From contig JAXLNO010002966.1 of assembly GCA_038087875.1 (NCBI GenBank), forward strand, positions 186,001-250,000: DNA of 64,000 nt, in the 5' to 3' direction. The notes beneath the pieces are model-generated. The model saw only the letters and a program-made list of their open reading frames with translations, did not search any database and had not been told where the DNA came from. The stretch is from Malacoraja senta. Lineage: Eukaryota. Positions 3,870 to 25,114 of this stretch are shown here, one piece after another (the first letter of the stretch is position 1; every line of letters starts with the position of its first letter). A program made the translations under genes and the position numbers.

Positions 3870-4010
3870 CGTTTTGCGGTATACAAAAATGCTGGAGAAA
3901 CTTAGCGGGTGAGGCAGCATCTATGGAGCGAAGGAAATATGCAACGTTTCGGGTCAAAACCCTTCTTCAGACCCGGCTATTTCCTTCACTCCATGGATGC
4001 TGCCTCAAGC
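3870..4010. mobile_element. Foldback remnant made of two inverted Penelope-like terminal repeats
   Basis: gaggcagcatctatggagcgaaggaaata (3911-3939) is inverted at about 3978-4007, with the hammerhead motif in the loop. Confidence 0.7.
3943..3970 (-). ncRNA. Minimal type I hammerhead ribozyme motif in a Penelope-like terminal repeat
   Basis: Minus strand reads CTGAAGA-A-GGGTT-TT-GACCC-GAAA-CGTT: intact core, stem II and palindromic ACGT stem III, with a GUU cleavage triplet. Confidence 0.65.
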
Positions 4011-4321
4011 CCTGTCCCATTGTGCGAGTTCACACAAGAGCTTAAAATCACTGGTAGCATCTCTGTCCCATCTTCAAATTCCCACTTTGAAATAAAATAC
4101 AGATTTCGACTTAAACAATTTGCAGCAGGATCGCGATTAGTCGATTCCCACGCATTTTCAATCATCGTTCGATTCAGTGTAATTTTCACACCTAGTTGAT
4201 ATAGTTTTTTTTTTAAGATACAGTACATTACAATAAATGGTTTCAAGCATACCCAGTACTAAACGCACGAACATTAAGGTGGTTACTGATGTTACAAACA
4301 GTTATAAATGAATATAATTTC

Positions 4322-4342
4322 AAAGTGAAATAGGAGATTTCC
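4322..4342 (+). promoter_or_regulatory. Adjacent IRF-E-like (AAAGTGAAA) and NF-kB-like (GGAGATTTCC) motifs
   Basis: Motif match only, at 4322-4330 and 4333-4342, in apparently unique, relatively CpG-rich sequence; an ATG follows at 4367. Confidence 0.2.
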
Positions 4343-5220
4343 GTGGAAAGAATATTTGACCAGAATATGGCGAGGTCGCTGCAAAATGCTCACTTAAAAC
4401 AATACGCCGTCAACTCAGGATTGTTTCTTATCCCTCTGACAGGTGTTTCAATCTCACCTCGCAGCTCGCTGTTAATCGATTCATAGCTATTAATTTTCAT
4501 TCCTGGTCCGTAAACGCTTCAAGTTACGCTTCTTGTGTGGTGGTAAGGGGGGGGGGGGGATGCTAGGATAAAATACCATATATTTGTATCTATATAGCGA
4601 TCCTGCTGCGAAATTTTTGTCGCGTTGTAATTTATTTCAAAGTGAGAATTGGAAGATAGGGGCAGAGATGCTACAGAGATTTTGATAGGAGGGAAACGTT
4701 ACAGCAGCTGAGTAAAAGATTAGTCAAATGGTAGGTTCAATGAAGATCGGGCGAGGGGGATTGGGTGTGGGGGAAAAGTATCTATAGTTTGGGACTTGCC
4801 TAAATGAGTACTGAGATGGATTATCATTCCACACCAAATTTCTTAGACAACAATACATGTTATGCAATTATCACAACATTTTGTTGGATATGGATCAACC
4901 TATGGTACATGCTCGTAAATTAGTAAAACAAATGTTCTTTAAGTACTGCTGTTTCTGGGATGGGATTTCTGATAACAAATAACCTACATTCTATATTTTG
5001 TCATAATGTGGCTGAAACAATGGCATATTTTGTGATATTTATTGAGATAGAAAGATACAACTGAGTTTGGGCAAGATATTACCTTGCAACATTCTGTATG
5101 TCAGATATTGTGAAATGGAACAGAAATTATGGGAGGATTGCATAAAACTACAATTCAAAGGTAATGAATATACAGAGTATTCTTATTTCCATCATGAACA
5201 TACAATAGTGATATAGAACA

Positions 5221-6150
5221 CCAGGTCCTACTACGGTAAACTCACGAGCTACTACGGTATGACTACGTGTTAAAAAGTATTAATTTTTTACACCCTGAGT
5301 ATATTTTACATGTGGACATTTTTCAACATGTTGAAAAATCTTCACAAGTTACCACGTTTCCCGAGTACCTGCCGTTAGCGCTAAGAAATGGCATGTTGGC
5401 CTTTATAACAGGAGGAATCGAATATAGGAGCAAAGAGGTCCTTCTGCAGTTGTAGAGTTCTAGTGAGACCGCACCTGGAGTATTGTGTGCAGTTTTGGTC
5501 CCCTAATTTGAGGAAGGACATTCTTGCTATTGAGGGAGTGCAGCGTAGGTTTACAAGGTTAATTCCCGTGATGGCGGGACTGTCATATGCTGAGAGAATG
5601 GAGCAGCTGGGCTTGTAGACTCTCGAGTTTAGAAGGATGAGAGGGTATCTCATTGAAACATATAAGATTTGTTAAGGGCTTGGACACGCTAGAGGCAGGA
5701 AACATGTTCCCGATGTTGGGGGAGTCCAGAACCAGAGGCCACAGTTTAAGAATAAGGAGTAAGCCATTTAGAACGGGGACGAGTAAACACTTTTTCTCAC
5801 AGAGAGTGGTGAGTGTGGAATTCTCTGCCTCAGAGGGCGGTGGAGGCCGGTTCTCTGGATGCTTTCAAGAGAGAGCTAGATAGGGCTCTTAAAGATAGCT
5901 GAGTCAGGGGATATGGGGAGAAGGCAGGAACGGGGTACTGATTGTGGATGATCAGCCATGTTCACATTGAATGGCGGTGCTGGCTCGAAGGGCCAAATGG
6001 CCTGCTCCTGCACCAATTGTCTATTGTCTATTGAAACGTTCCGAGCTCCGACGTACCCGCTACGTTCATTCTACGTGTTTACCACGAGTTTTGATTTTTT
6101 TTTAAACTCGGGAGAGCTCTTGGGTGAACTCGCACAGTGGAACAGGGCTT
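5221..6150. mobile_element. MITE of the family seen at 22704-23017, split by a CR1 insertion
   Basis: ccgagtacctgccgttagcg..ctaaga (to 5388) resumes as cgttccgagctccgacgtacccgc at 6037, collinear with the intact copy. GAAA sits on both sides of the insert (5385-5388, 6033-6036). Confidence 0.75.
5387..6032 (+). mobile_element. CR1-type LINE 3' fragment (HER1-like)
   Basis: Encodes the CR1 RT C-terminus (RPHLEYCVQFWSP..RKDILAIEGVQRRFTRLIP) and ends in the CR1 tail with ctattgtctatt repeats. Confidence 0.85.
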
Positions 6151-6159
6151 CACACCCGC

Positions 6160-6615
6160 TGAGTTTCTCCAGCATTTTTGTCTATCTTCGATTTTCCAGC
6201 ATCTACAGTTCCTTCTTAGACATTGTGCGGTGACGGCTGCATCTGCGGTTCCTTTCTGTTGGGGGGAGGGGTGGGGGGGGGAGGGTCCTGGCCCGTGGCG
6301 GCTCCTGATAAGTGATATGTTTCCTCCGCAGGTGCTGCCTTGCCCGCTGAGTTCCTCCAGCACTCTGTGTTTTTTGTTTGGCTCTGAAGTTGAAGGTGGA
6401 CCCCCTGTGTCTACCTTCAACTCCCTGTCTGTGGTGGCTCAGCGGGACGGGCAGGGGCTCTGGGGAGAGGGTTGCGGTTCTGGTCGAGATCCTTCTTCAG
6501 ACAATCACAAGTACTCTCACCGACGAGAGTTCAGTTCAGTCTGAAGAATGGTCTTCTCTCCAGAGTCGCTGCGTTGCCTGTCCTGCTGAGCTACTCCAGC
6601 TTTTGTCTGTCTCCA
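6160..6615. mobile_element. Cluster of degenerate Penelope-like terminal repeat fragments in both orientations
   Basis: Repeated cccgctgagttwctccagcattttt and ctgaagaa motifs; inverted cttcagac/gtctgaag at about 6495-6546. Confidence 0.6.
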
Positions 6616-6731
6616 ATTTCAGAGTTAGAGAAAATTGCAGACTTGATTTTTAAAATCTCAAAATTTTGTAACATTGCTAGAAAATGTACTCGCATCTTGG
6701 AGGCCGAAGGTTAGGTTATTAGCCAAGAAAG

Positions 6732-6803
6732 ATGGACTTTGTTATCCCTCAGTACAGCAACATCAAGAACGATGTTGTTGTACTGAGGGATAGCCAAGTC
6801 TAT
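6732..6803 (+). other. 33-bp stem, 6-nt loop hairpin
   Basis: Arms 6732-6764 and 6771-6803 pair at 29 Watson-Crick positions, 3 G-U and 1 U-C. Confidence 0.85.
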
Positions 6804-6891
6804 CCCTCATTGCTAGCAGCTGATGGGAAGCGGCTGTAAAGTGGGAAGCGGCAGTAAAAGGACAGCGCTGCTGAGGGGGGGGGGGGGAGAG

Positions 6892-7552
6892 AGAGTTCAT
6901 TTCACAGCGTGTGGGTAGTCTGTCCAGGGGTAAAGTAGCGGGGAGGGTTGAGGATGGGGTCGGCCGGGGATCATCCAACTCGAGCGGGTCAGCAGGCGAT
7001 GGATAACAGGACAGCGGGCGGTGGAGCTTACTCCATATGTCAGGGCGAGTAACCTCAATTGATCCCTTGTTCGCGTTGACACAGGGGTAAGCTCCACCGC
7101 CCGCTGTGATGTTATCCATCACCCGCTGACCCACTCTGCTCTATGATCTTTGCTCTTGAGCTGGTCCCCTCACTGTTCAGACGGAGAGCACTGCCAGAGG
7201 TGAGCGGGCCGGCAGAAGACGCTGAGATGGCAGTCGGTTCCGCTGTCCGGTGATGGAGGTCACTCGTAGCCACGCGAGCTGCTTCCCACCCCGGCCACAA
7301 TGCGGTGGCTCCGCGCCCGGAGCGCCGTGGCAGCGGTGAGTGAGTGTTACTGGCATGAACACCGACCCCCACCTTCTCAACGCTCCTTCCATCCTCGCAA
7401 CTTTACCCCTGGCTAGACCCCACACGCTGTGAAAGGAACTCTACCCCGAATTGTCATGTTACTCACGGCCCGTGACTCATTTATAATTATTTATTTATAT
7501 TTCTACGAAAAAATTTCCCAATTGGGCCCCGCACCTCTTAAGGCCGGCCCTG
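6892..7552. mobile_element. hAT-like non-autonomous element, right end only, with an internal ~75-bp imperfect inverted repeat; left boundary unknown
   Basis: Ends in TTAAGGCCGGCCCTG (CAGGGCCGG-type terminus, like the element ending at 13972). 6892-6963 is the imperfect reverse complement of 7361-7442. No left terminus found. Confidence 0.55.
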
Positions 7553-7752
7553 CTTCTACCCACGGGCCATCGATGTAACGTGGCTGAGAGATGGTGAGGG
7601 AGACCACGAGTCTGAATCCAGTGATCTGTTGCCCAATTGGGATGGGACTTACCAGCTGAAGAATACAATTCAACTGAGTAGAGAAGATGTGGCAAAATTC
7701 TCCTGTTACATCGAACATGCAACTCTGCTGCAGGGAGTCAATGTTCCACAGG
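7543..7752 (+). CDS. MHC class I-like alpha-3 (C1-set Ig) exon, 5'-truncated; possibly a pseudogene
   Basis: Translates to (RPC)FYPRAIDVTWLRDGEGDHESESSDLLPNWDGTYQLKNTIQLSREDVAKFSCYIEHATLLQGVNVPQ, with the class I alpha-3 motifs FYP, WLRDG, PNxDGTYQ and C.IEH..L. Strong phase-1 donor CAGG|GTAAGT at 7752/7753. Native homology starts at 7553; the 7543 start assumes a cryptic acceptor. Confidence 0.85.
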
Positions 7753-7845
7753 GTAAGTGGCAAGTCAATGAGGCTGATCACTTGAGACAATAAACCTCCT
7801 GGACTGAGATAACAGCCTCAACACACTCTTAACTAAGCTGTGCAT

Positions 7846-8158
7846 TTAGACTTTAAACTTTAGAGATATGGTGCAGATACAGGCCGCTCAGCTCACTGAG
7901 TCCACGCTGAACAGTGATCAGCCCGTACATTTACACTAACCAACACACTGGGGACAATTTACAATTTTACCTAAGCCAAGTAACCTACAAGCCTGTATGT
8001 CTTTGTAGTGTGGGAGGAAACCGAAGCACGCGGAGAAAACTCACGCAGTCACAGGGAGAACATACAATGTCCTTGCAGACAGCACCTGTAGTCAGTATCA
8101 AACCCAGGTCTCTGGCGCAGTAAGGCAGCAGCTCTACCGCTACGCCACTGTGCCGCCC
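7846..8158 (-). mobile_element. tRNA-derived HE1/V-SINE-like SINE
   Basis: Minus strand: ggcacagtggcgtagcggtagagctgctgccttac head, gtttgatactgactacagg B-box region, central domain and ctaaa-repeat tail. Confidence 0.8.
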
Positions 8159-8213
8159 ATTAATAATTTGTGGTTATCTAATTGCCCAGAATTATTGATA
8201 GTCAATGGAATGT

Positions 8214-8502
8214 GGTTTTAGTTTAAGAGATACAGCGCAGAAACCCGGCCCTTCAGCCCACCGAGTCTGCGTCAACCAGCGATCCCTGCACACTTACATT
8301 ATCTTACTTATTAGGGGACAATTTACAATTATACCACGCCAATTAACCTACCAACCTGTATGTCTTTGGACTGACGGAGGAAACCGGAGATCCAGGCAAA
8401 ACCCACGCAAGTCCCGGGGAGAAGGTACAAAACTCTGTATAGACGGGACCCGTAGTTAGAATTGAACCCGGGTCTCTGGCGCTGTAAGGCTGCTGTTCCA
8501 CT
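8214..8502 (-). mobile_element. HE1/V-SINE-like SINE
   Basis: Same head, body and tail as the 7846-8158 copy. Confidence 0.8.
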
Positions 8503-8937
8503 AAGTGGGCAAAGCAGAGCCAAAAGGAATACAGTGTAGTAAGTGTCTGGTTTTACATTTTGGCAGTCGGAATAAAGACGTAGACTATTTGAGCTACAAA
8601 GTGGGAGTACTAGCGCAGGATTCCCAAATAGTTCACTTGCAAATTGAGTCGGTGGTAAGTAAGGCAAATGCAATGCCAGCATTCATTTCGGGGGGCCTAG
8701 AATATAAAAACAATGATATAATGCTGAGGATTTATCGGGCACTGGTGAGGACACATTTGGAATATTGTGAGCAGTTTTGGGCTCCATATTAGAAAGGATG
8801 TGCTGGCTTTGGAGAGGGTCCAGAGGAAGTATGTCCTGGGGATGATTGATTTAACGTATGAGGAATGTTTGAAGTCTCTGTGCCTGTGCTCGTGGGATTT
8901 AGAAGGATGAGGGGGAAATCTCATTGAAACCTACCAG
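8503..8937 (+). mobile_element. CR1 fragment, left part (continues at 13973-14325)
   Basis: Encodes RALVRTHLEYCEQFWAPY and stops at ctcattgaaacctaccag, where the hAT element is inserted. Confidence 0.8.
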
Positions 8938-9461
8938 CAGGGACGGATTTAGATGAAGAGAGGCCCTAAACTGTTCCACTTGTGAGCCCCCCGCCCCAAT
9001 CCCCCACCCCCACGACTAGAGGAAGATGGTCCACCAGATTGACACCGATTTGCAGCCGAGCGTGGCCAATGAGATAAGGGGCTGGTAAGCTGGGCTTTAT
9101 TTATTTATTTATTTATTGCCTGTGCTAGTGTCGAGTTATTGGCTTAAAACACTATTATTCTGAAATGGAGGGCAAGGAAAATTACTGAAGGGTTGTTTAG
9201 AGACTACAGTGCGTTGTGACAGCATATGTAAGAAAGGCCTATACACCTTGCAGGGCTCTCACTTAATTTTTTTTCTCTGTTGTCAGCCGGGCAACCTTGG
9301 CAGCTTTTAAGTTGCCAAATTACAGTTTAGGTGGTTATTTAAGACGGCTTGCATGGCGCGTGCGATAATGTGCTTGGACGAAGTGCATAGTTACCTGTCG
9401 GAATTATACTCAGTGAAGCACTCGCATATTATTTCTGCTTTAAATAAAACTACAAACTAAA

Positions 9462-11592
9462 CCGCTGTTATTTGCTTTAGTAATTGAACCCCTTGCTGAA
9501 AAAATAAGAACACACATGGATATCTACGGTTATAATACAAAATATTCAAATAACAAAATATCCTTATATGCCGATGACGTACTATTGTACATCACAAAAC
9601 CACAAATTAGTATACCAAATATATTAAATTTAATTGAGGACTTTGGATCCTTTTCAGGATATAGAATAAACTGGAACAAAAGTGAAATTATGTCGATAAA
9701 ACCAAAAGACTCAACACACCTCAGGAAATTCCCCTTTAAAATAGCTATAGAAAAATTCAAATATTTGGGAATTGAAATTACTAGAAATTACCAGGATATG
9801 TTTAAAGCCAATTATAATCCCTTACTTAAGAAATTAAATAATATGATTAAATTTTGGAAAACACTTCCGATGTCCTTAATAGGCAGAATAAATGCTATAA
9901 AAATGATTTTCTTACCACAAATCCTATACCTATTTCAATCAATACCTATATATCTCCCAAAAAAGTTTTTCAAAAAATTGGACTCAGACATTACAAATTT
10001 TATATGGGATTATAAATCCCATTGAATACAAAGAGCACACCTTAATAAATGAAAAGAGTTGGGGGGTCTCGCGCTCCCTAACTTTATGTATTATAAATGG
10101 GCAGTAAATATTAAAAATATGATTCACCTGCTGGACAATTCTGCCCAGCAGGTGGACTGGATTATAATGGAAAAAGGGGACTGTTCCCCGAGTAATATAG
10201 GAGCGATTATTCTCTCTCCAATAAATTTGAATAATAAAATTTATAATAAAAACCCAATTATAAATAGCACAATTAGAACATGGAAACAAATAAAACAGAA
10301 TCTAAAATTAAGAAACCTATCTCTCTCAATACCAATAGTTAATAACCCATCGTTTAAACCTTCAACCATAGACAAATCATTTATACAATGGGAAAGAATG
10401 GGAATCAAAACGCTCGAAGATCTGTATGAATTGGGAAAATTACTATCATTTCAACAACTACAACTGAAATATAATCTGAAAAATAATCAATATTTTAAAT
10501 ATCTACAAATTCGTGATTACCTGAAAAAATACACAAAAGACTATCATAATATGCCTTCCGACTTACTAGATGAAGCAATGAAGACAAAGGCGGAATCAGC
10601 TAATCTAATATCGTACTTATATAATATCATTTTAAACATAGAAATACCCACAACAGAAGGAATTAGAAGAGACTGGGAACAAGAATTAGCTATAAAAATT
10701 TCAAAAGAGAGCTGGGATAACCACTTACTACAGGTGCATAAATGTTCGATCAACGTATACGCTCATCCAATTCAAAACATTACATAGACTATATTATTCA
10801 AAAACTAAATTAAATAAAATCTTTCCTAATGTTTCACCAATATGTGATAAATGTCTATGTCAAGAAGCTACCATAGCGCATTCTTTTGTTTTTTGTACAA
10901 AAATCCAAAATTTTTGGTATGAAATATTTGATATTTTCTCAAAATTAATTAAAATAAAACTGGTACCAAAACCAGAATGGATCATTTTTGGAATATCGGA
11001 AGGTATCCCTGAATTAAACGTGTATCAGAAGAACTTATTCAATTACGGGCTAATAATGGGAAAAAGGCTCATACTTAAATTCTGGAAAAATGCGCCCACA
11101 CCAACAATAAAAATGTGGACATCAAATATGTTGGAAACATTACATCTGGAAGAGATGAGATTCCTCTTAGCAGGGAAAGCAGACCAATTCCAAAAGACGT
11201 GGTCTACGTTTTTGGACCTATTACAAGCATGAGGTGCAATAGTAATTTAAAAAATAAAGAAAGAAAGAAATGGTATCAGGACCTGGTAATGGGACTTGGT
11301 CGGTGGTTCCCTTTCTGCGATTGTTCCTACTTTCTTTTTCTTTCTTTTCTAGGATCTACTTTCTTACTTTACTTCCTTCTCTAACTTCTTTTCTAAGGGG
11401 CTTTCTTTTCACAACACTCTCTTGCACCTCACGACTCTTGCGCACTTTCTTTACTTTTCTTACTTCTATCTTTCTCTTAAAGCTCAAAAAAATGAAGCGG
11501 TATAAAAAATGTATTAAGATATAAGTGTTGTGTATTACTGTAATTTACCGTACTTCTAATAAAAATAATTTTAAAAAAAATAAATAAATAAA
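9462..11592 (+). mobile_element. L1 LINE, 5'-truncated, with nonsense and frameshift lesions
   Basis: LLFALVIEPL..KISLYADDVLLY, FSGYRINWNKSE, GGLALPN and a CDKC..QEATIAHSFVFC C-terminus. In-frame TGA codons near 10023 and 10050, a deletion near 10755, a T-rich 3' UTR, AATAAA and an A tail. Confidence 0.92.
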
Positions 11593-11750
11593 CATATTCA
11601 CCAATCAGGACATGGTATATATCACAATGACATGCAGCAAAATTATAATACTGTATCTCAACTCTTTTTACACGTTGCAATGAATGCAATTTCTATTATT
11701 TCTTTCCACTTCCAAACAAAAATGTGGTTGGATTATTCAGCGTATGATCA

Positions 11751-12352
11751 ACCGAAGCGCAGGCTTGGCGATCGCTTCGCACAACACCTCCACTCAGTTC
11801 GCAATAACTAACCTGATGTCCCGGTGGCTCAGCACTTCAACTCCCCCTCCCATTCCGAATCCGACCTTTCTGTCCTGGGCCTCCTCCATGGCCAGAGTGA
11901 GGCCCACCGCATATTGGAGGGGCAGCACCTCATATTTGCTTGGGTAATTTACACCCCAGCGCTATGCACATCGGCTTTTCTAATTTCAGGTAGTCCTTGC
12001 TTTCTCCCTCCCATTCCCAGCTCTCCCACAGCCTACTGTCTCCGCCTCTTCCTTTCTTTTTCATGTCACCCATCCCCCCCCCCCCTACATCAATCTGAAG
12101 AAGGGTCTCGACCCGAAACATCGTCTATTCCTTCGCTCCACAGATGCTGCCTCACCCGCTGATTTTCTCCAGCTTTTTTGTCTACCAATGGGACCCACCA
12201 CTGGCCACATCTTCCCATCTCCTCCCCTGTTGGCTTTCCGTAGAGACCGCTCCCTCCGTAACTCCCTGGTCGATTCGTCCCTTCCCACCCAAACCACCCC
12301 CTCTCCTGGCACTTTCCCTTGCAATCACAGGAAATGCTACACTTGTCCTTTT
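11751..12352 (+). mobile_element. Penelope-like element fragments in tandem: GIY-YIG C-terminus plus terminal repeat, then a linker fragment
   Basis: RRLGDRFAQHL..PVAQHFNSPSHSESDLSVLGLLHGQSEAHR, a tail with a hammerhead motif at 12095-12122 (stem III ACGT decayed to ACAT), then PTTGHIFPSPPLLAFRRDRSLRNSLV..GTFPCNHRKCYTCPF. Confidence 0.85.
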
Positions 12353-13972
12353 AATTAAGTTTAAGACTATGGGACTGTACATTGGCCATAAAATTGCTGC
12401 CTAAAAGTGCCAGTGACCCGGAATTGATCCTGAATATGGGTGCTGTCTGTATGGAGTTTGCTCCTTTTCCCTTTGATCGCATGTGTTTTCTCCGGGTGCT
12501 CTTGTTTCCTTCCACATTCCAAAGGTGTGCAGGAACCTATTTCAGACCCAACCCAAAACGTAATATTTTCCTTTTGTCCAGAGATTCTGTCTGACCTGTT
12601 GAGTTACTCCAGCTTTTTGTGTCTATCTTCAGTTTAAACCAGCATCTGCAGTTCCTTCCTACACACACGATACTATACAATAGAACGTTATTAATCCCAG
12701 GTGGGAAATTGTATGTGTGTGTGGGTATATATTTAATACACACACACACATATATATTTATATAGTTATATATTCATATATAAATATACACCGTTTTGTT
12801 TTCTCGTTTATAACATTGTTTACAGAGTACTATGTTTACATATGCTGTTGTGCTGCTGCAAGTAAGGATTTCATTGTTCTAACTGGGACGTGAGAGAATA
12901 AAACACTCTTGACTCTTGACTTACTTCGCTAATGTGTGGGAAAGAACTAGTGTACGGGTGATCAATGGTCGGCGTGGACTCGGTGGCCTGAAGGGCCTGT
13001 TTCCACGCTGTCTTTAAATTAAACTAAAGACACTAAAACCAGAGGGAGTCTAAAGAAGGGTATCTACCCGAAACATCACCCAATTTCTTCTATCCTGAGT
13101 TGCTGGCTGCTCCGTGGAGTTCCCCCGCACAATTAAAGCATGGAATATTCTTCACCCTACCATAGTTACCCAACCAGACGCAACTAAATTTAAGGTACCT
13201 TTTTTTCCCCAAAGAACCCTTTTTTGCTTAAGTCCAAGTCAAGAATCAAGAGAGTTTTATTGTCATGTGTCCCAGATAGGACAATGAAATTCTTGCTTGC
13301 TGCAGCACAACAGAATATGTGAACATAATACAGAACAGGAGATAAAAGTTCAGTGTGTTTATATACCATAGACCATATATATACACAATACATAAACAGA
13401 TAAAATGCAATAGGCTGTTATTGTTCAGCCCTCTACCACCTCCAGTTTAAATTCCTTTTAGAATGTTTATGGAGGATCAGGAAACCAGAAGCGAGAGTTA
13501 CTCCAGGGAGATACTCCTGATCCAGGCTCAGGGAGTGATTCTGTGTTAGTTTTCAGCGGTTGCGGCGAGGCAGCAATGGCGGCGAAATCTCCCACAATTC
13601 AAAGCGAGGGAGAAAGTGCCCAGCGCTGACCAGTTGCCGTGGCAGTGCGCATGCGCAGGACGGCCGATGATATGCGGATGTGCAGGGGAGGACGTGCTGG
13701 CCGTAGCAGTGCGCATGTGCAAGGCGGCCTGCCGTGCCGGCCTAATGAGGAGCGAGCGGAGAACGGAGACCCGGACACGGATAACGGGCGGTGATAGAGA
13801 TAGAGAGGGGGGCCGCCCAGAGTTGAACGGCAGGTGTCCGGGAGGCCCCCTACACTTCAGGGCCCGAGGCTTCAGCCTATGAAGCCTAGTGGTAAATCCG
13901 GCTCTGCGAGCCCCCCCTAGATCTCAGGCCCTAAGCTGAAGCTTGTCCAGTTTATACGTAAATCCGGCCCTG

Positions 13973-14325
13973 CCTACCAGATAATGAAATGCCTGGTTAG
14001 TTGATGGGAAAGGATGTTTTCAGTAATGGGAGTCTAGCACAGCCTCATAATAAAAATACCTACCTTCAATATGGAGATGAGGAGGAATCTCTTTAGTCAC
14101 AGGGTGGTGAATCTGTGGAATTCATTGATACAGACAGCTGTGTGGGTCAAGTCATTGCATATTTTTCAAGCAGAGATTGATAGGTTCTTGATTAGTACGG
14201 GTGACAAAGGTTACAGGGAGAAGGCAGGAGAATGGGATTTAGCGGTAAAAATAGATCTGCCATGACTGAATGGTGGAGTAGACTCAATGGACTTGAAAGG
14301 CATAATTCGGCTCCAATATCTTATG
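13973..14325 (+). mobile_element. CR1 fragment, right part of the copy split by the hAT element
   Basis: Resumes as cctaccagataatgaaa; encodes EMRRNLFSHRVVNLWNSL and ends in the CR1 3' tail. Confidence 0.8.
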
Positions 14326-14959
14326 GTCAAAATTATTCTTATGTCACCCTTAACTCATCCATCCAAATGTAGGAACAGTGGAAGCAAGATAGGCTGATCC
14401 TGGACAAGGTCTCTTATCTTCTTCCTTGGGCATCTAGTTAATTTTCTGATAGTAGTTAGTTACACAAAAGACCAATAGTGGTGCCATATCCAACCCCATT
14501 ATCAGTCTGAAGTAGCTACACCTGTTGCAAGAGAGCGAGAGCGAGAGAGAGAAAATTAAATTCTCAGTTATCATTGAAATATCAGCAAAGTTTAAAACCT
14601 TTGAAGTTTTATCAACTATAAATGGGTTCACTTATTTGCTATAATAACAATCATCAACATAAGAAAATGGCCTTGTTGACCTCTACACTGTAAATAGTCA
14701 TCTATTTCTGACATACTTGATTCTTTAAATTCTTAATTAAATGCTGCAGATAAAATCTCAATACCATAATACTAATATGAGCTTCATGATTTTTCATTGA
14801 TCATTTTAAGCACATCCATCCTCTGTATAAATACATAAATCTAAAACTTTATTACTTTTTAATTAGATATGAACAGTGCTAGTTTAATTTAGATAATAAA
14901 ATCATTACAAAGTTGTTATTGATCAATAAATGTTTAAAATGCACTATATATGCCAACAG

Positions 14960-15189
14960 AGAGGGCAGTGAAAGAAGATATAAAGATTAGGATCGTGACT
15001 GCAGCTGTAATCGTTCCTCTCATTCTCCTGGGGATCATCCTTGGAATTGGTTGCTGGAAGAAGAGGAAAAAGATAAAACCTTTCAATGAACAGGGACCAG
15101 CTGACAACAGCAGAGACCAGGAGACGACTGCAGTGACCATGAAGCACAATCAGCTTCCTTTGGGATGCAGAGGAGGTCTACCGGAATGA
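14960..15189 (+). CDS. Connecting peptide, transmembrane and cytoplasmic exon of the MHC class I-like gene (probable terminal coding exon)
   Basis: Acceptor caacag|AG at 14959/14960 is phase 1, matching the alpha-3 donor. Translates to (E)RAVKEDIKIR-IVTAAVIVPLILLGIILGIGCW-KKRKKIKPFNEQGPADNSRDQETTAVTMKHNQLPLGCRGGLPE*: a hydrophobic helix followed by a basic stop-transfer cluster. Confidence 0.7.
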
Positions 15190-15655
15190 TGCCTGGATTA
15201 GTGGGGTATTAGCCACAGGGAAAAGTTGGACAGACTGGACAGTTGGATTGTTTTCTCTGGAATGTCGGGGATTGAGGGGAGACCTGACAGTAATATATCA
15301 AACTGGGAGGAGTAGAGATAGGGTAGACCATCCGACTTTTTACCCAGGAAGGAAATATCAAATAAGAGGAGGTACAGCTTTACAATGAGTGGCAAAGTTT
15401 AAAAAAGATGTGCAGAACAAGTGTTTTACGCCAAGGGTGGCGAGTGACTGGAATGTGCTGCCGGGGGTGGTGGTGGAAACAGATATGATAGTGGCATTTA
15501 AGAGACTTTTAGATAGGCACATGTATATGCAGGGTATGGATGGATATGGATTATGTGCAAGCAGATAACAATTGGTCTTGGCATCATTTTCGGCACAAAC
15601 ATTGTGGGTCAAAGGGCCTGTTATTGTGCTGTACTGTTCTATGTTCTATGCTCTT
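15160..15655 (+). mobile_element. CR1 3' fragment overlapping the end of the TM/cytoplasmic ORF
   Basis: gggatgcagaggaggtctaccggaatgatgcctggattag..ttggattgttttctctggaa matches the CR1 text seen in other copies here; ends in gtactgttctatgttctatg. Confidence 0.8.
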
Positions 15656-16374
15656 TATTGTATCAATGCTGACTGATGACTTTACATTCAGCCATTAATT
15701 TTTCAAGTGCTGTCTTCACTGCAGTTACCCTGTGATTCCAAAGTCATACATTGCGCCACATTTTGGAATAAAAGGTCGCCTATTTGATTGATTGATACTT
15801 TTTTTCCATATGTGTCATGTCACAGTGAAATTCTTTGTTTTGCATGACATACAAAGAGTCACCATATATAGGGTGTCGACGCAGTTACAAAGTAATCATT
15901 ACAGTTCCCAATGGTCCCTCTTTGTTCTGGCAGCCCCTCCATGTTGGGTCCCTCTTTAAAATAGTTACGAAGAAGATTTATTTTCCAGGAGGTGTATGAT
16001 TTGCCTGAACTTTCTATTCCAGCTGTGAAGACAAGGTGAATGAATATTTTCCAGGTTGAGATAGAGAATTTTAGATCAGAAATGAATCAAAGATTGCAGG
16101 AATAATGCAGTAAACTGATCGAAATCAGATTGGACATAATGTTATTGAATGATGCAGTCTTTTCAAGGGGGCTTACAGCTGATTACTAATCTTATTTTAT
16201 ATAAAACATAAAAATGTTCATCTCACGAAGAGGCCCTTTGGCCCACAATGACTGTGGTGAACATGATGAGATGCTAAACTGATCCCATCCAACTGCAACA
16301 TGATCCATATCCCTCTATTTCCTGCAGATCAGATTGTCAATCTAACTCTCAAACATCATATACTTATCTTGCCA

Positions 16375-16555
16375 GAAATAGACACAAAAAGTTGGAGAAA
16401 CTCACCGGATCAGACAGCATCTCTGGATACAAGACATAGGTGACATTTCGGGATGAGACCCTTGTTCAGACTCCAGAAATGCTGTTTGACCCGCTGAGTT
16501 ACTCCAGCTTTTTGAGCCTATCTTCGGTTTAAACCTGCATCTGCAGTTTCTTCCT
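16375..16555. mobile_element. Foldback of Penelope-like terminal repeats with a degenerate hammerhead in the loop
   Basis: gacacaaaaagttggagaaactcaccggatcagacagcat is inverted as atgctgtttgacccgctgagttactccagctttttg. Minus-strand CTGAACAAGGGTCTCATCCCGAAATGTC at 16442-16469. Confidence 0.7.
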
Positions 16556-16752
16556 GGTTATTTTGCCACTTCTCTTTGTCACATACTGTAACCTGCATTC
16601 CGTGTTCACATACCACCTGATGGTGTAGTGGAGAAGTAATTGCCTTTGCATTTAATGCTTCACTCAGTGCTTCAAGTATTTGATGGGCCAGTCAACAAGG
16701 ATCTTTGTTTTCAATACGAACCACGCTCTACACCACAGCTTACATAATATTG

Positions 16753-17000
16753 CTTAGTTTAGTTGAGTTATAGAGCATGGATGCAGAGCCTTCAGCTCAT
16801 CGAGTTGATAACATCCATCTTGCACACCAGTTCTATGTTATCCCTCTTTCACATCCTCTTTCGATACACTAGGGCAATTTTACAAAGGCCAACTCAGCTA
16901 CAAACCTGCACATCATTGAGATGTGCGAGGAAACCGAAGCACCGGGAGAAATCCCACGTGCTCACAGGGAGAACATGCAAACTCCACATAGACAACATCC
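16753..17000 (-). mobile_element. Degenerate HE1/V-SINE-like SINE
   Basis: Body and tail match the other SINE copies; the head is truncated. Confidence 0.65.
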
Positions 17001-17952
17001 CAGTACCATGTCCTGTGAATATTTATGGAACACGGTAACGTATGGGGGCTGTGTTTTCTTAACCCTACAGAGCACTGGGAACAATACTCATTATCAAAGC
17101 TGTGGTGTAATAGCTGTGGAAGTGTTTTATGTGCAACAGACCGAGAATTTCATTGTATATCCACCAGTGTCATTTCTGAATTATGAGCATTTAATAAAAT
17201 AATTTTGAATGAGTTTTACCAAGACGTTAGCATGCTATATACGTGTTTTGTCATTGTTAATACTACAGACAGCTATTTACTCAATCATAAGTTCATAAGA
17301 TCATAAGTGATAGGAACAGAATTAGGCCATTCGTCCCATCTATCATGGCTGATCTATCCTATCCTCCAAACCCCATTTTCCTGCCTTCTCCCCATAACCC
17401 CTGACACCCGTACTATTGAAGAATCTATCTATCTCTGCCTTAAAAAAATATCCATTGACAGCCTCCACAGCCTTCAGTGGCAGAATTCCACAGATTCACC
17501 ACCCTCTGAATAAAGAAATTCCTCCTCATCTCCTTTCTAAAGGAGTGTACTTTAATTGTGAGGCTTTGCCCTCTGCTGAGATGCTCCCACTAGTGGAAAC
17601 ATCCTCTCAACATCCACTCTATCCAGGCCTTTCACTATTTGGTAAGTGTAGATGGTTTATGCATGCAACCAATAATATAGCTACCTCAGTACTACTAACC
17701 ACGCCTTAGTTATCAAGTATAAGAACTCTCTGTCCCTCTTGCTCCTCCCTGGTTCCAGCATGATGACAGACTGGGTGCAGTCAGTGCTGGAAAGTGTTTA
17801 ACCTGTGTTATCATTAAACGTTAAGTAAAGCTACAAGTGAGTCAGACTTAACATCTTTACATGGTGTCAGCAAGTTAAAACGCACACCTCCTGTTTATCG
17901 TTTTTTTATTTCTTTGAAAGTGTTGCTTTATCGGAGTTTTGTACCTTTTGCC

Positions 17953-18657
17953 ATGGCATCCTCGTGCCGCAAACCCTCGCCCCTAGTCTTTGATGCTGAC
18001 ATAGCTGAACGCTGGGCGACTTTTGAAATGGACTTCACACATTACATTAACATCGTTCATCGCAACGATCCTGACATTGTTAAAGCTTCTCTCCTACTGA
18101 ACCTTGCTAGTCCCGATGCCATGAGGAGAGCACGAGCCTTCGCCTATGATCCCGCGGTCCGGGATGAAAACGATCAGGTTCAAGTACCTGTGGAGTCTGC
18201 CAACGATCCGGTATGTCTATTGCGAAAGTTTGCAGAAATTTGCGACTTGCCCTCTAACCGCATTTTAGAGCGAGCCAAGTTTTTTACGAGAAAGCAACAG
18301 CCTGATGAACCTGTTGAATGCATTATTGCGGATCTGCGCTATCTCGCCCAGAGGTGTCGATTTGAAAACATGACTGACCAGCTTACCAGGGACATTCTAG
18401 TGACAGGTATGCTGGATCAGAAATTGCGATCGGAGCTATTGAGAAGGCCGGATCTTACTCTGACCGACGCAATGCATGCATGCAGGTTGGCTGAAGTCGT
18501 TGACCCGTTGTTCGGACAAAGGGACGCTGTTGGTCGATCGGTCAACTTAACTGGTCTCAACAGACCGCGTCCTAAAATAGACAACTCTAGACCCGCGCCG
18601 CGGGCAGGCTACGTCCCCAGAGGGCGGGTTGCCGTCTGTCGGGCCACCCATGCTTGA
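17953..18657 (+). CDS. gag: Gypsy Gag (capsid region); zinc knuckle lost at the internal deletion
   Basis: MASSCRKPSPLVFDADIAERW..ERAKFFTRKQQPDEPVE..DL..LAQRCRF..RDILVTGM..LRSELLRRPDLTL. Confidence 0.85.
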   Translation: MASSCRKPSPLVFDADIAERWATFEMDFTHYINIVHRNDPDIVKASLLLNLASPDAMRRARAFAYDPAVRDENDQVQVPVESANDPVCLLRKFAEICDLPSNRILERAKFFTRKQQPDEPVECIIADLRYLAQRCRFENMTDQLTRDILVTGMLDQKLRSELLRRPDLTLTDAMHACRLAEVVDPLFGQRDAVGRSVNLTGLNRPRPKIDNSRPAPRAGYVPRGRVAVCRATHA

Positions 18658-20125
18658 TGATGGCTGCCAGCTGCAGTGCCTGGTCGAGCACACCGCCGCT
18701 GACCCTGCTTTGCAGCAGCTGGCAGCCATCATCAAGCGTGGGTGGCCCGACAGACGCACCAATTTGCCATCGGGTGCCCAACCGTTCTTCCTGGTCCGCG
18801 ATGAGCTGGTGATCCAGGATGGGGTTATCGTCAAAGGCCGCAAGGTCGTGGTCCCAGCCTCTCTGTACGATCTATACTACAACGCGGCCCACAGCGGTCA
18901 TCCTGGGGTCGAGGCCACTGTTTCTCATGCCCAGGGACAATTCTACTGGCCTAGCATGGCCAAATACATCAGGAACCGTGTGTCCTCTTGTGCCTCCTGC
19001 AACAACCTTACCCCACACCAGCAGCGGCAGCCTCTTTTGCAGCGGCCAGCGCCGGCCATGCCCTGGACATCGCTGGCTGCCGATATATTCGAATGGCGGG
19101 GGAAGGTGGACTCATACTCCAACTGGTTCGAGGTGGACCTCCTTCCGTCCGTCACCTCCGGGATGGTCATCGCCAAAATGCGGGAGCATTTCGCCGCCCA
19201 CGGTGTCCCTGTCCGTTTGCAGACCGACAATGGACGGCAATTCACAAGTGCCGAATTCAAAGCTTTCGCTGCGAGGTGGAACTTCCATCACTACACCAGC
19301 AGCCCCGAGTACCCTCAGAGTAACGGCCTGGCCGAACAGGCCGTGCGGAGTGCTAAGGGCCTGATGGAGCAGTCCCGCCTGTCTAACTGCGATTTCTACC
19401 TGGGCTTACTAAACCTACGTAACGTCTCACGGGACCCGGCTATGGGTTCCCCTGCCCAGCGTCTGATGTCAAGGGTTACAAGACCACCTATGCCAATCGT
19501 CCAGCAGTCCCTGCTACCAAAAGTGCTCAATCCTGCCACTGTCCAACAACGGATCGATCAGAAACATGAAGTTCAACGACGGTCCCACGACAGGTCCTGC
19601 CGCCCTCTACTGCCTCTACTACCCTGGCAGGTCGTTCGGATGCGGACCACCACCGGCTATTCCCGCCTCGCGACTGTGATTGGTGTGGACGACTCTCCAA
19701 GATCCTACCTGGTGGATTACGAGGGGACTGCCTATCGACGGAGCCGTCAACACCTGTTGGCTGTGAACGAGCCGAAGCTTCTTCCTGCGGCTCCTTATGC
19801 TCCTCCGTTGCGGTTCCTACCTGCTGCTGCTGATCGCCCTGCTGCTCCATGCATGCCCCAGTCCCCTCGCTTATTGCGGTCTCCTTCTCCGTTGCCTCCT
19901 GGTTTTGGCCGGGCGGTTTCACCTCCTGCACGTCCTCCCCCTCCTGTCTCTCCCGCTCCGACTGCATCTCCCCCTCCCTTAACATTCTTGCCTGCCTCCG
20001 CTACGCCTTCTCTTCTTTCCGATGGGGGGGGGGGGGGGAAGGTGCTGTACGTACGCGTTTGGGTCGCATTGTTAAGCCGCCTGTCCGCTACGGCGACTTT
20101 GTCTAAACTCGCATGTTTATTGTAA
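18629..20125 (+). CDS. pol: Gypsy integrase (HHCC zinc finger, DDE core, C-terminal domain); no protease, RT or RNase H
   Basis: H(SG)HPG..FYWPSM..CASC; PWTSLAADIF, LQTDNGRQF, PQSNGLAE; a small in-frame deletion in DIFEWRG/KVDSYS. Confidence 0.9.
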   Translation: MPSVGPPMLDDGCQLQCLVEHTAADPALQQLAAIIKRGWPDRRTNLPSGAQPFFLVRDELVIQDGVIVKGRKVVVPASLYDLYYNAAHSGHPGVEATVSHAQGQFYWPSMAKYIRNRVSSCASCNNLTPHQQRQPLLQRPAPAMPWTSLAADIFEWRGKVDSYSNWFEVDLLPSVTSGMVIAKMREHFAAHGVPVRLQTDNGRQFTSAEFKAFAARWNFHHYTSSPEYPQSNGLAEQAVRSAKGLMEQSRLSNCDFYLGLLNLRNVSRDPAMGSPAQRLMSRVTRPPMPIVQQSLLPKVLNPATVQQRIDQKHEVQRRSHDRSCRPLLPLLPWQVVRMRTTTGYSRLATVIGVDDSPRSYLVDYEGTAYRRSRQHLLAVNEPKLLPAAPYAPPLRFLPAAADRPAAPCMPQSPRLLRSPSPLPPGFGRAVSPPARPPPPVSPAPTASPPPLTFLPASATPSLLSDGGGGGKVLYVRVWVALLSRLSATATLSKLACLL

Positions 20126-21608
20126 TGACACTATCCCTATTGCCTCCATGTGTATTTGATTTCTAAGGGGAAGGATGTAGATGGTTTATGCATGCAACCA
20201 ATAATATAGCTACCTCAGTACTACTAACCACGCCTTAGTTATCAAGTATAAGAACTCTCTCTCCCTCTTGCTCCTCCCTGGTTCCATCATGATGACAGAC
20301 TGGGTGCAGTAAGTGCTGGAAAGTGTTTAACCTGTGTTATCATTAAACGTTAAGTAAAGCTACATGTGAGTCAGACTTAACATCTTTACAGTAAGTTTCA
20401 ATGAGATCACCCTCATCCTTCTAAACTCCAGCGAGTAGGGGCCTAGTGCCGTCAAACGCTCATCAGAACGGAATAACAACAACTTTACTCTTCATATAAC
20501 CAATTGTGAAAATTCACACCTCCACATTCAGGGACAGTCTCTTCCCAATTGTTATCAGGCAACTGAAACCATCCTACCAACAACCAGGGTGCAGTCTTGA
20601 ACTACTGTCTCCTGCATTGGAGATCATCGGACAATCTTTGATCGGACTTTACTGCCTTTATCTTGCACTAAACGTTATTCACGTTATTCCCTTTATCATA
20701 TATCTGTACACTATGGATGGCTCGATTGTAATCATGTATTGTCTTTCCACTGACTGGTTAGCACATTTAGTTTATTTAGTTTAGAGATACAGGACGGAAA
20801 CAGGGTCCGCACCAATTCCCGCACACTAACACTATCCTACACACACTTGGAACAGGTTTACATTTATACCAACCCAATTAACCTACATACCCATAGTCAA
20901 GATCAAACCCGGCTGTGTGGCACTTAAGGCAGCAACTCCAGTGCTGCATCACCATGCTGTCCTTATTGTTGTAGGATGTGCAGGGAATGGAGGTATATTA
21001 TGTGCCGGCAGATAGGAGTTGGTCTTGGCATCATGTTCAACACAGACATTGTGGGCCAAAGGGCCTGTTCCTGTGCTATACTGATCTATTGTGGTGATTG
21101 TGAAAACACATAATAATTACTTGATTGCTGATATCTTAAGTGTATTTACTAGGTACATTAAATATTCAGACAAAACTAAATTCCATTCCTGATTCATTTA
21201 ATTCCCACACCCCATTCAGCGTGAAGCATCAACTTTCTAGAGGTAATGATATATTTATTTGCTGTTAATATTTAACTGTGAGTTTAATGTTACACCAAAT
21301 GGCAATTGGCTTGTTTCCATCAGTGTTTGCAATCTGGGTGACCCTGAATTTATTGCTTAGGTGTGAGATTCCTCGCAAGGACTGAGATGAGGCAGAAACT
21401 TGACTGTTACAGACTTTTTGGAGGGGTTTGCAAGATTTTGACCCAACACCTCCGAAGGCAAGACAATATATTTACAAGCAGCCTCAAACACACCTCAGAC
21501 AGTGTCATCAAGGCATTCATCACTGTCTGTGAAAAAACATGCCCTGCACATTTCCTTTAAACTCTCATCTTAAAGCTATGCCCTCTTGTATTCAATGTTT
21601 CCATCCAT

Positions 21609-21928
21609 GTTAAGTTTAGTTTATTTTAGTTTAGAGATACAGCGCGGAAACAGGCCCTTCGGCCCACCGGGTCCGCACCGACTAGTGATCCCTGGGAATT
21701 AGCACTACCCTACACACACTAGGGATGATTTACACATACACCAAGCCAATTAATCTACATACCTGTACATCTTTGGAGTGTGGGAGGAAACCGAAGATCT
21801 TGGAGAAAACCCATGCTGTCACGGAGAGAACGTACAAACTCCTTACAGACAGCACCCGTGGTCGGGATGGAACCTGGGTCTCCCACGCTGCAAGCGCTGT
21901 AAAGCAGCAACTCTACCGCTGCGCCACA
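21609..21928 (-). mobile_element. HE1/V-SINE-like SINE
   Basis: Full head, body and tail, as in the other copies. Confidence 0.8.
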
Positions 21929-22703
21929 GTGACTGCCCCTGTTCTGACTATCTATCCTATCTATACTTCTCATAGTATTATATCAGGTGTTCCATCAAAC
22001 TCCGGCATTCTAGCGGAAGCAATCCATGTCTGTCCATATGTTTCATGTAGCCAACACACCCTAGTCAAGGCATCATTCTTGTAAACCTCTGCACCCTTTC
22101 CAATGCCTCTACATCCTTTATGTAATGGGTCAACAAAAACTGCACATAATACTCCAAATGTGGACTACCCAAAGCCCAATAAAACTGTATTATGACTTCC
22201 TGTCTCTAGAAACCCAAGATTCAACCCCAAGATCTCTCTGTAGATTAATGCAGTTAAGGGTCTTGCCAATAACTGTATACTTTTCCTTTACATTCGACCA
22301 CTCAAAGTGTAACATACTTGCTCAAAATGAATTCCATTTGCAATTTTTCGGCCCATTTCTGTATCTGATGTATTTCCCATTGTACACTACAGACTTCTTC
22401 ACTGTTCGCAACTCCATCAATGTTGGTGGCGCCTGCAAACTAACTAACCAACCCAACCACTGGGTGGCGCCAACAATGGCTGCCTCGCCAACAGTCTGTC
22501 TTTCCCTTCCTTCTTTGTGTTTTAACAGTTTGTGTTAAATCAGGGGTTGGCAACCTACGGCCCACGGGCCGGATCCGGGCTCTAAGCCGAAATCATCCAA
22601 CCCGCAGGCGTAACACAAAACACACACAACACTTATCCGAGAGTAGTTCTCACACACACACACACACACAGCCAATTCCATATCACAACACCTGTCGACT
22701 CAA

Positions 22704-23017
22704 GGGCCTGTCCCACTGTACGAGCTAATTCAAGAGTTCTCCCGAGTTTCCCCTGATTTGAACTCAGAGAATAACGGTAATAGCCGCTCGTAGGTACTCG
22801 GGGCTCTCGTGGACATTTTTCAACATGTTTAAAAACCTTCATGAGTCTTCACGAGCTTACCGCGTTTCCCGAGTACCTGCCGTTAGCGTTACGAGCTGCT
22901 AAGAGACGTCCCGAGCTCCGACGTACCCGCTACGTACATTCTTCGTACTTACCACGAGTTTGATTTTTTTTAAACTTGGGAGAGCTCTTGAATTACCTCG
23001 TACAGTGGGACAGGCCC
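22704..23017. mobile_element. Intact MITE with ~44-bp TIRs; superfamily not assigned (TTAA-like flanks)
   Basis: GGGCCTGTCCCACTGTACGAGsTAATTCAAGAGyTCTCCCrAGTT at both ends with 3 mismatches; flanks TCAA and TTAA. Confidence 0.85.
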
Positions 23018-23374
23018 TTAAATCTCTCTCTCCGTCCCTACCCTCCCACCCCCTCTTCCATCCTCCCGACCACCCAAAGTGAAAGCGCCCCCCCACCTCG
23101 GTGCTGCGGCTTGTGTGAAACTGCGGCGGGATGAGAGCGGCTTCGACAAGGTGGTGATGGAGCGGTTTCCTCGGGAGCCCAGCGGCGGACTGGCTGGAGG
23201 AAAGCAAAGCATCAGCGGGGTCGGTGAGCAATTCCGCTCCGGCCACAGTTTTGCACTTTAGTCGTATTTGTTGCAGGGGTAATTGTCTTTTTGTTACGAT
23301 TTTTTAAAACTATAATTAATTAATTATTAACTGAATCAAAATAAGAATGCAAGGAAACAACAAGAGTCCAATCA

Positions 23375-23700
23375 GAACATAGACACAAAATGCTGGAGTA
23401 ACTCGTCGGGACAGGCAGCATCTCTGAAGAGAAGGAATGGGTGACATTTTGGGTCGAGATCCTTCTTCAGACTGATGTCAGGGGAATGGCAGGTCGATAG
23501 CTAAGGAAGCATATAGATAAGGATGTGTGAGATGTGAAAACAGGACAAAGGGAATGGAGATCAAGGAAAATGTAGCAACAAAGGAAACAGAGATAAAGAA
23601 GGGAAACTCTCGGAAAAGATTGACAAGGGGGGGATCTGCTACATCGTGAGAAGCTGAGGTAAATATAACACCTTTATTTAACAGCAAGCTTCTTCGATAA
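23375..23700 (-). mobile_element. Penelope-like 3' region with a degenerate hammerhead (23443-23470)
   Basis: Terminal repeat motifs; minus-strand CTGAAGAAGGATCTCGACCCAAAATGTC. Confidence 0.65.
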
Positions 23701-25114
23701 ACAAATAGGTAACAAGCCAACAGACGGTTACACTGATAAAGTTATACCAACAAGGGTGTTTGCAGGTTCAAGTGCAACATAAACTCTGGCCTTGAAGTAT
23801 GATACTGTTTGGTTGGTTTCTGTGTGCATACGCAATGAGATTCTTTACAATCTAAATCAGAATATGAAAAACTGAGAAAAATGTAAAATATATAGATTCA
23901 TTCTTGCAAAACCTTTCACAACATTTTAAAAACATTTAGAACCACTGAGTATTTCTTGAAATGTAAACACTATTGAATGAATAAACAAAGAACATTGAGC
24001 AGGATGACACAGGGATAAGCCCTAGCATCACAACGTCTGTGCTGGCCATGTTGCCATTACAAACTAATCCCATCTTCCTGCACATGGTCTATCCAGACTG
24101 AAGAAGGGCATCGATCCAAAACATCACCCAGTCCTTCTCTCCTGAGATGCTGCCTTTCCCGCTGAATTACTCAAGACTTTGTGTCTACCTTTGGTTTAAA
24201 CCAGGATCTGCTGTTCCTTTCCACACACCCCTTCATTTCCTCTCTGTTCACATGTCAGGACCCAAGAGAGACAGGAGAAAGCTTCTTTAATGAAATGTCT
24301 AATTAAATGTTCCAACAACAGAACAACTACATTATTACATGCAGCAGTCTAACAGGCCCATAAACAGAGTATAAATTGATAAAAAAAGATAATAATTAAA
24401 AAAAAAATAAAAGAGCCACTGTGTGGCGCGACAGTCAAAATCAATTTATTAGTTAACATAAAACATAGAGCAGTACCACATATATGCCTGTTTAAATGCC
24501 TTTAAACATTGCTATCATATCTATTTCCACTACTTCCTCTGACAGCATGCTCCAAGCACCCACCACTGTGTAAAAAATCATTTAAGATTTACTCCTCTCT
24601 GTCTCTCATAATTATATATACTTCCATCAGGTGTCCCCCACCCTCCTCATATTCCAACTCCACAAGAGCAAATGATCTAAGTTTGTCCAACCTGTCCTCA
24701 CAGCTGACACTCTCAAACACTGCTTCCAATTTTCATTCAAAGGGAAATGTGACGAGCGACAGATGATCTGTGTTCTTCGGTGGTATCAACTGCAAGATGA
24801 ATATCAATGAGGATTCTGGGATTAACCTGTATTCCTTAAATAACGTTTTGGGATTCTTTTTTAGAGGGCTGAAATATATATCAGGCCATTCAGCCCACCG
24901 AATCCACACCAGTCATTGACCATCCGTTCACACCAGTTCAGTGTTATCACATTTATGCATCACATCTTGACTTCACGGAGGCCAATTAAGCAACAAGCCA
25001 GCATGTGGTGTACGAGGAAGTTGGAGCACCTGGAGGTAGCCAGCGCAGTCACAGGGGGAAGGTGCAAACTCCACACGGACAGTACTTGAGGGCAGGATCA
25101 AGGCCAGGTCATAA

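Follow-up and report, generated by a model that had tools for sequence, protein, structure and literature searches.

Class I pseudogenes and gene fragments disrupted by transposons are well known, for example from the human and teleost class I regions. Among the class I genes of sharks and rays, UFA and UGA are two CD1-like lineages (PMC12562908), and UDA, UFA and UGA have been named as low-copy elasmobranch lineages (PMC12562908, PMC10751288). The names UDA, UEA, UFA and UGA are given without sequences in the review and in the genome paper (PMC12562908, PMC10751288). MHC genes of skates are often found on unplaced scaffolds (PMC10751288).

The closest relatives of the locus described here are two predictions from Leucoraja erinacea, both named "MHC class I-related gene protein-like" (MR1-like), namely XP_055486430 (protein P0005, locus L001) and XP_055486496 (protein P0004, locus L002). 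Among solved structures, PDB 9ch4 chain A ('Ig-like domain-containing protein') is the best match both of the fragment in our window (E 1.5e-15) and of full-length P0005 (E 2.9e-60, alpha-1 to alpha-3). The motifs ..C-x3-G-FYP.. and ..C-H-I-E-H.. are common to 9ch4 and to this lineage, with an identity of only about 50%.

The window, by which we mean the whole stretch of 64,000 nucleotides that was analyzed, very probably holds the non-functional remains of a skate MHC class I gene, a non-classical one of the elasmobranch MR1-like lineage, and these begin inside the alpha-3 exon, at the end of a repeat. The locus combines a sharp breakpoint, a repeat flank, missing exons and apparently neutral divergence, and there is no protein model or RNA contig at the acceptor proposed for it. 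The features referred to below are as follows (a slash within a sequence or between two adjacent positions marks a boundary).

6700..7551, no strand assigned: high-copy repeat with long internal inverted repeats, delimited by contig depth; 6700 is the start of the stretch examined and not a known left limit
6720-6815, 6892-6947 paired with 7389-7442, and 6982-7136: internal inverted repeats of the high-copy repeat (inverted-repeat search)
7539..7542, plus strand: TAAG, an in-frame TAA stop (7539-7541) overlapping an AG (7541-7542) (sequence; stop-free segment from 7542)
7543..7551, plus strand: nine repeat-derived bases (..GC CGG CCC T..) of the proposed 210-nt exon (sequence, alignment)
7552..7752, plus strand: retained 3' 201 nt of the alpha-3 (C1-set) exon (translation, Pfam, PDB, tblastn, three-way alignment)
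7552..24052, plus strand: block paralogous to L001:19071-31399 (collinear homology, >16 kb, about 90-93% identity)
7753..7758, plus strand: splice donor GTAAGT of the alpha-3 exon, phase 1 (sequence; alignment of the X23 contig ends exactly at 7752)
8938-13972: insertion in the paralogous block, with LINE reverse transcriptase at 9444-11229
14960..15189, plus strand: connecting-peptide/transmembrane/cytoplasmic exon (acceptor cag/ at 14957-14959; TGA stop at 15187-15189)
17648-20383: insertion in the paralogous block, a retroelement with integrase

The truncated alpha-3 exon and its relatives

Positions 7552-7752 encode FYPRAIDVTWL...FSCYIEH...GVNVPQ, free of stops and frameshifts and with the F-strand Cys kept. 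The stop-free translation of 7545-7751, RPCFYPRAIDVTWL...GVNVPQ, that is RPCFYPRAIDVTWLRDGEG...FSCYIEHATLLQGVNVPQ, matched the Pfam C1-set family PF07654 (E 7e-10, 39.5 bits against a cut-off of 21), and the match covered only positions 25-86 of the 86 in the profile. When 1.8 billion representative proteins were searched exhaustively and without a profile, 769 matched at E<=1e-3, the two closest being P0004 (88% identical) and P0005 (85%). A word search of short proteins with the 69-aa piece gave zero candidates, which is explained by the length range of that search and not by missing relatives. After the alpha-3 domain of 9ch4 chain A, the best matches among solved structures were CD1c, MR1 and class I chains, and all of the best matches align with the fragment from the FYP motif onward. 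The C1-set match and the MHC-I, MR1 and CD1 alpha-3 domains among the best structure matches confirm the MHC class I alpha-3 identity proposed by the first-pass annotation of the sequence. A non-MHC Ig domain as the best match, which that annotation had named as the observation that would overturn the identity, was checked for; the best PDB matches are class I-type alpha-3 domains.

The exon is incomplete at its 5' side. Counted on L001, the first 72 nt (24 codons) of the 273-nt alpha-3 exon are missing and 201 nt are left, and these are 93% identical in nucleotides to L001:19071-19271. Positions 7564, 7601, 7603, 7631, 7671 and 7719 carry variants particular to the window copy. The lost codons, PEVFIGIKRDGSQSLSLSCLVTG in P0005, specify strands A and B together with the Cys five residues before F, and have no counterpart in the window. 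The fragment is thus not a complete seven-strand C1-set domain with a Cys pair between the B and F strands. An Ig fold without strands A and B has lost half of one sheet. The loss of both strands and of the B-strand Cys rules out a normal Ig fold, and because the lost 24 residues carry the two strands and the canonical Cys, the Cys that now stands beside FYP cannot restore the C1-set fold.

The break is sharp. BLASTN homology of the window to L001 and to L002 begins at base 7552 in both cases, so that the abrupt start of homology in the FYP region, described earlier from the sequence alone, is reproduced in DNA against two paralogues. At the junction, a three-way alignment shows ..GTCACAG/GCTTCTACCCAC in the paralogues against ..GGCCGGCCCT/GCTTCTACCCAC in the window; with longer flanks, the same junction is ..CTTGTCACAG/GCTTCTACCCAC.. 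in the paralogues and ..AAGGCCGGCCCT/GCTTCTACCCAC.. in the window. None of the listed Logan contigs from public runs bridges 7551/7552. The best exon contigs of runs X1 and X2 are only 98% identical to the window, and their alignment ends exactly at 7552; such 98% identical variants are compatible with several copies. In run X3 (organism B), a contig over 7552-7826 carries exon and intron at 96% identity, and its alignment likewise ends at 7552. This contig may be the intact orthologue, with an empty site.

Little of the remaining gene is present. In tblastn, five class I proteins matched only 7554-7751 and 14950-15186 in all 64 kb, the latter with 84% identity to P0005 residues 281-359. The same search identified no leader, alpha-1 or alpha-2 exon and no 5' piece of alpha-3 in the window, and the unique DNA of the 6-kb intron 3 of L001 was likewise not found there. 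Leader, alpha-1, alpha-2, alpha-3 and transmembrane exons in order, as expected of a full gene, do not occur in the 64-kb window; at least the 7.5 kb upstream lack the leader, alpha-1 and alpha-2 exons, intron 3 and the initial 72 nt of alpha-3.

The Leucoraja genes agree with the window copy in what is left. The alpha-3 piece is 85-88% and the transmembrane/cytoplasmic exon 84% identical in protein sequence, exon phases and tail (..KHNQLPLGCRGGL.E) are shared, and collinearity at about 90-93% identity extends through introns and 3' flank for >16 kb. A YQNI motif is absent from the tail of the window copy. L001 differs in having alpha-1, alpha-2 and the full 273-nt alpha-3, whereas the window copy begins at exon base 73 and has the repeat upstream instead. 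The L001 exons (alpha-1 at 10003-10263, alpha-2 at 12701-13021, alpha-3 at 18995-19276 and the transmembrane exon at 21938-22174) form a full set within 12 kb. The second relative is less regular: in the model XP_055486496 (L002:10001-14232) the first 69 residues are unrelated, alpha-2 is partial, alpha-3 has a 3-nt deletion and a transmembrane exon is absent. Such a model probably reflects a decayed gene copy, so that L002 would be a second pseudogene in this lineage.

A maximum-likelihood tree was computed from 27 class I proteins of elasmobranchs, chimaera and coelacanth together with the fragment, to which the window contributes only 65 columns. The fragment and the two Leucoraja genes form one group (support 99), nested in a batoid clade (98) and, more widely, in an elasmobranch-wide "MR1-like" clade of 11 rows (99); the fragment thereby falls into the elasmobranch non-classical MR1-like lineage. 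The classical-type "F10 alpha chain-like" clade (12 rows, 100) is separate from the lineage of the fragment and from P0064. P0064, a close look-alike of 9ch4, is sister to the MR1-like clade that holds the fragment and not a member of it.

Several further elements were observed in and around the paralogous block. The insertion at 17648-20383 corresponds to an empty site in L001, carries an ORF (18581-19999) with integrase zinc-binding and rve core domains, and is flanked by short direct repeats of the GTAAGT type. Two LINE-type elements have reverse-transcriptase domains: one at 8938-13972, with ORFs 9444-10022 and 10053-11229, the other near the beginning of the window at 511-2730. The former lies in the intron between the alpha-3 and transmembrane exons and lengthens it to 7.2 kb, compared with 2.7 kb in L001. 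In the same intron, a SINE-like repeat is present in two copies 364 nt apart (7860-8150 and 8220-8500). It is by far the deepest feature in the four runs, including organism B, with a summed depth of up to 8.5 million, and looks like a very abundant repeat common to the sampled species. A 20-nt motif of the CCCGCTGAGTTTCTCCAGCA type occurs three times in 6153-6620, with relatives at more than 10 other places in the window. An Rfam search of 5000-9000 gave no hammerhead at E<=1. Far downstream, in 45970-64000, directly after an N gap at 45775-45969, GC skew stays at extreme values of 0.67-0.91 per 2-kb window.

The repeat left of the breakpoint

We aligned Logan contigs from four public runs to 6700-8300 at 85% likeness and used the summed contig depths as a contrast only, as they do not equal copy numbers. 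In runs X1 and X2, the contig depth on 6700-7551 was 20-170 times that on the exon. The summed depth in X1 (organism A) was 3,000-30,000 over 6700-7563 and about 170 over 7564-7779 (172 over the exon); in X2 (also organism A) it was 47,000-490,000 and 2,300-9,500, respectively. The collapse falls in the 54-nt bin that holds 7552 in both runs of organism A, and is similar in organism C. In organism B, depth left of 7552 is essentially zero, yet the exon and the downstream SINE are present. The collapse of depth around 7552, together with the lack of the flank in organism B, shows a high-copy and lineage-restricted repeat on the left. Positions 7512-7513 are covered by dozens of distinct contigs, as in a many-copy family of the mobile type. 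One X1 contig spans 7410-7542, so that the terminal 110 nt and the inverted-repeat arm at 7389-7442 belong to one repeat. The coincidence of the homology start with the depth collapse at 7552 upholds the earlier view that the exon is cut at a repeat terminus.

On the plus strand this terminus reads ...GGCCGGCCCTG, i.e. ...CCCAATTGGGCCCCGCACCTCTTAAGGCCGGCCCT(G), and on the minus strand CAGGGCCGGCC... The CAGGG.. of the complementary strand fits what we take to be the hAT end consensus. A hAT origin is plausible, with the terminal CAGGG motif as its sole ground, and it is unproven because a partner inverted repeat, a target-site duplication and a transposase were not found. Exact and near-exact searches identified no plus-strand partner of the repeat end upstream. 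When the reverse-complemented last 60 nt were compared with 1-7492 by local alignment, the best score in these 7.5 kb was 20, and shuffled queries scored 17-31. A second copy of the target was not present in the window with up to 3 mismatches in 17 nt, so that the 8-bp duplication typical of hAT insertion is not seen within the window; the other junction may lie outside. On this point, as on the missing 5' exon piece, target search and tblastn agree with the first-pass annotation within the window. Pfam searches of ten stop-free segments of 3300-7440 returned no protein domain at all, and so no transposase remnants. Other copies of the repeat end 7140-7552 were found neither in the window nor in 56 kb of Leucoraja DNA. 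Zero matches to the last 24 nt were seen in a metagenome scan, and in the full-text literature the 11-nt end motif occurred only in unrelated primers and similar sequences.

With hAT elements and MITEs the repeat has in common the terminal CAGGG, subterminal palindromes, high copy number and lack of coding capacity. It differs from them in having no inverted-repeat partner, no 8-bp duplication (the candidate duplication would be CTTCTACC) and no transposase.

Near-perfect hairpins lie inside the repeat at 6982-7136 (53-nt arms) and 6720-6815 (45-nt arms). Rfam on 5000-9000 returned no family above threshold. The hairpin at 6982-7136 had a sub-threshold match to the plant family MIR1437 (61 bits, compared with a gathering score of 168) and is probably a generic long hairpin; plant miRNA families were rejected for the internal inverted repeats on these grounds. 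The CAGGGG...CCCCTG pair at 6925-7411 was considered as a separate MITE and rejected, since complementarity extends past the motifs and therefore leaves no flanking duplications.

The putative acceptor and the evolution of the surviving exons

The sequence bears out the first description: an AG stands at 7541-7542, a 210-nt span of phase 1-1 extends over 7543-7752, a GTAAGT donor begins at 7753 and the following exon at 14960. If spliced in this way, the exon would take x-R-P and the start of a new Cys codon (TGC at 7551-7553) from 7543-7551. Because of the TAA at 7539-7541, the reading frame opens no earlier than 7542, which leaves the AG at 7541-7542 as the one acceptor that could be in frame. 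This AG is preceded by a pyrimidine-rich run. The candidate reads AAG/G, with A at position -3, while the acceptors of real family exons here are all CAG/ (..ttgcag/ for alpha-3). AAG acceptors are rare in vertebrates, and with its A at -3 the candidate is weak. By a rough estimate, and not a computed one, an in-phase AG would arise by chance within these few bases in roughly 10-20% of cases; judged by its sequence, so weak an AAG/G could easily be supplied by chance and would not go beyond it.

The translated piece has no Met and the window has no leader exon, and expression would therefore be possible only via splicing from an exon outside the window. No public protein model with the exon was found in the length ranges 38-120, 145-460 and 197-628 aa. 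No protein model uses the acceptor at 7543, nor does any contig of the public runs, none of which is a verified RNA run of the source species; the acceptor is thus unsupported rather than excluded. None of the runs on record as RNA contains the stretch; X23 is only guessed to be RNA. Its contig aligns to 7554-7752 only, at 93.5% identity, with 75 unmatched letters before and 38 after, and is likely a canonically spliced mRNA of an intact paralogue, in which the whole 72-nt 5' portion of the exon would be retained. As the alignment stops at the donor with unmatched flanks, it supports the donor 7752/7753 for the family and says nothing for 7543. Very likely the AG does not work as a splice site nor the Cys in a disulfide, and both are incidental products of the junction.

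The surviving exons look neutral in their evolution. Compared with L001, the alpha-3 piece has 4 synonymous and 10 non-synonymous differences (dN/dS 0.72) and the transmembrane/cytoplasmic exon 4 and 15 (dN/dS 1.08). When the codon counts of the two exons were summed by script, dN/dS was 0.90, on a small tally of 8 synonymous and 25 non-synonymous differences. Exon divergence (K 0.073 for alpha-3 and 0.089 for the transmembrane exon) matches that of the adjacent introns and flanks (K 0.063-0.098). Polarization with L002 assigns 4 non-synonymous and 2 synonymous changes to the branch of the window copy. Both exons are open and indel-free, with 0 indels against 2.8 expected from the flanks (P about 0.06), which suggests that the sequence was constrained for part of the divergence time or that the copy is young. 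The absence of indels is the sole hint of past constraint, and is expected if it was the branch of the paralogue that was constrained.

Origin of the truncated copy

The first-pass annotation had left a choice between a pseudogene and a transposon-rescued, shortened alpha-3. The results bear out the pseudogene: upstream exons are missing from 7.5 kb, evolution looks neutral, there is no protein model, and the RNA contig comes from an intact paralogue. We think that a DNA transposon, hAT-like by its CAGGG end, most probably inserted into the alpha-3 exon. In that case either the element together with nested insertions would exceed 7.5 kb, or a later event would have removed or detached the upstream part. 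Segmental or tandem duplication seems afterwards to have multiplied the truncated form, as the contig pattern in part suggests. An insertion predicts that the other junction reads ..GTCACAGGCTTCTACC followed by CAGGGCCGG.., with an 8-bp duplication. Against this mechanism, the second end and the target-site duplication are both absent from the window.

These absences weigh in favor of a break that involved no insertion, whether in a truncated segmental duplicate, at a deletion or rearrangement breakpoint that happens to abut the repeat, or through a repeat-mediated break without cut-and-paste. The partner inverted repeat, the target duplication and the 5' exon piece are all missing within 7.5 kb, and the paralogous block extends over >16 kb, as in a segmental duplication. 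However, the break lies within one base of the collapse in repeat depth, and the repeat ends there in a canonical hAT-type CAGGG (on the other strand) with subterminal palindromes, as expected of a terminus and not of a random breakpoint. We therefore consider an origin without insertion unlikely. It is much less probable still that the junction was made by the assembly, through mis-joining of a repeat copy to an intact alpha-3 exon at 7551/7552. Such an error would fit the lack of a bridging contig among those listed, the best exon contigs of X1 and X2, which are only 98% identical and end at 7552, and the frequent placement of skate MHC genes on unplaced scaffolds (PMC10751288); but a de Bruijn graph that contains an intact and a truncated form would also give contigs that start or stop exactly at 7552.

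Rescue by the transposon would make the repeat AG at 7541-7542 a functional acceptor that joins exons from outside the window to the 210-nt alpha-3, yielding a class I-like chain in which a new Cys precedes FYP. The acceptor with its pyrimidine-rich run, the phase 1-1 arrangement, the open frame, the intact donor, the intact transmembrane exon and the freedom of the exons from indels are all as such a chain would need. Nevertheless, the acceptor is AAG/G where real acceptors of the family are CAG/, the window holds no upstream exon of the gene, and no contig or protein model was found at the site. Moreover, dN/dS is 0.9, strands A and B and the canonical Cys are lost, and the piece contains no Met. 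The rescue proposed earlier thus finds no support, in view of the weak AAG/G, the missing leader and in-frame ATG, the missing transcript and protein model and the loss of strands A and B, and we regard it as very improbable. Equally improbable is the idea that the truncated exon and repeat junction were multiplied many times and that at least one copy uses the AAG/G with an unrelated upstream exon, so that a short alpha-3, transmembrane segment and tail would make up a new small membrane protein.

With the pseudogene as the preferred reading, the fragment should be annotated as a piece of a class I pseudogene and neither counted as a gene nor built into a chimeric model. Beyond annotation its importance is small. 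It does fit a picture in which a skate retains several broken copies of a non-classical class I lineage whose copy number is low in other sharks and rays, and the junction can serve as a dated marker of an insertion or rearrangement for tracing duplications in a poorly assembled MHC region.

The locus resembles the transposon-disrupted class I pseudogenes of multigene MHC regions in being a partial gene in a repeat-rich, duplication-prone setting, in its apparently neutral evolution and in retaining some open exons. We found no difference of substance from them, and the window copy is thus a further example of this class of pseudogene, in a skate.
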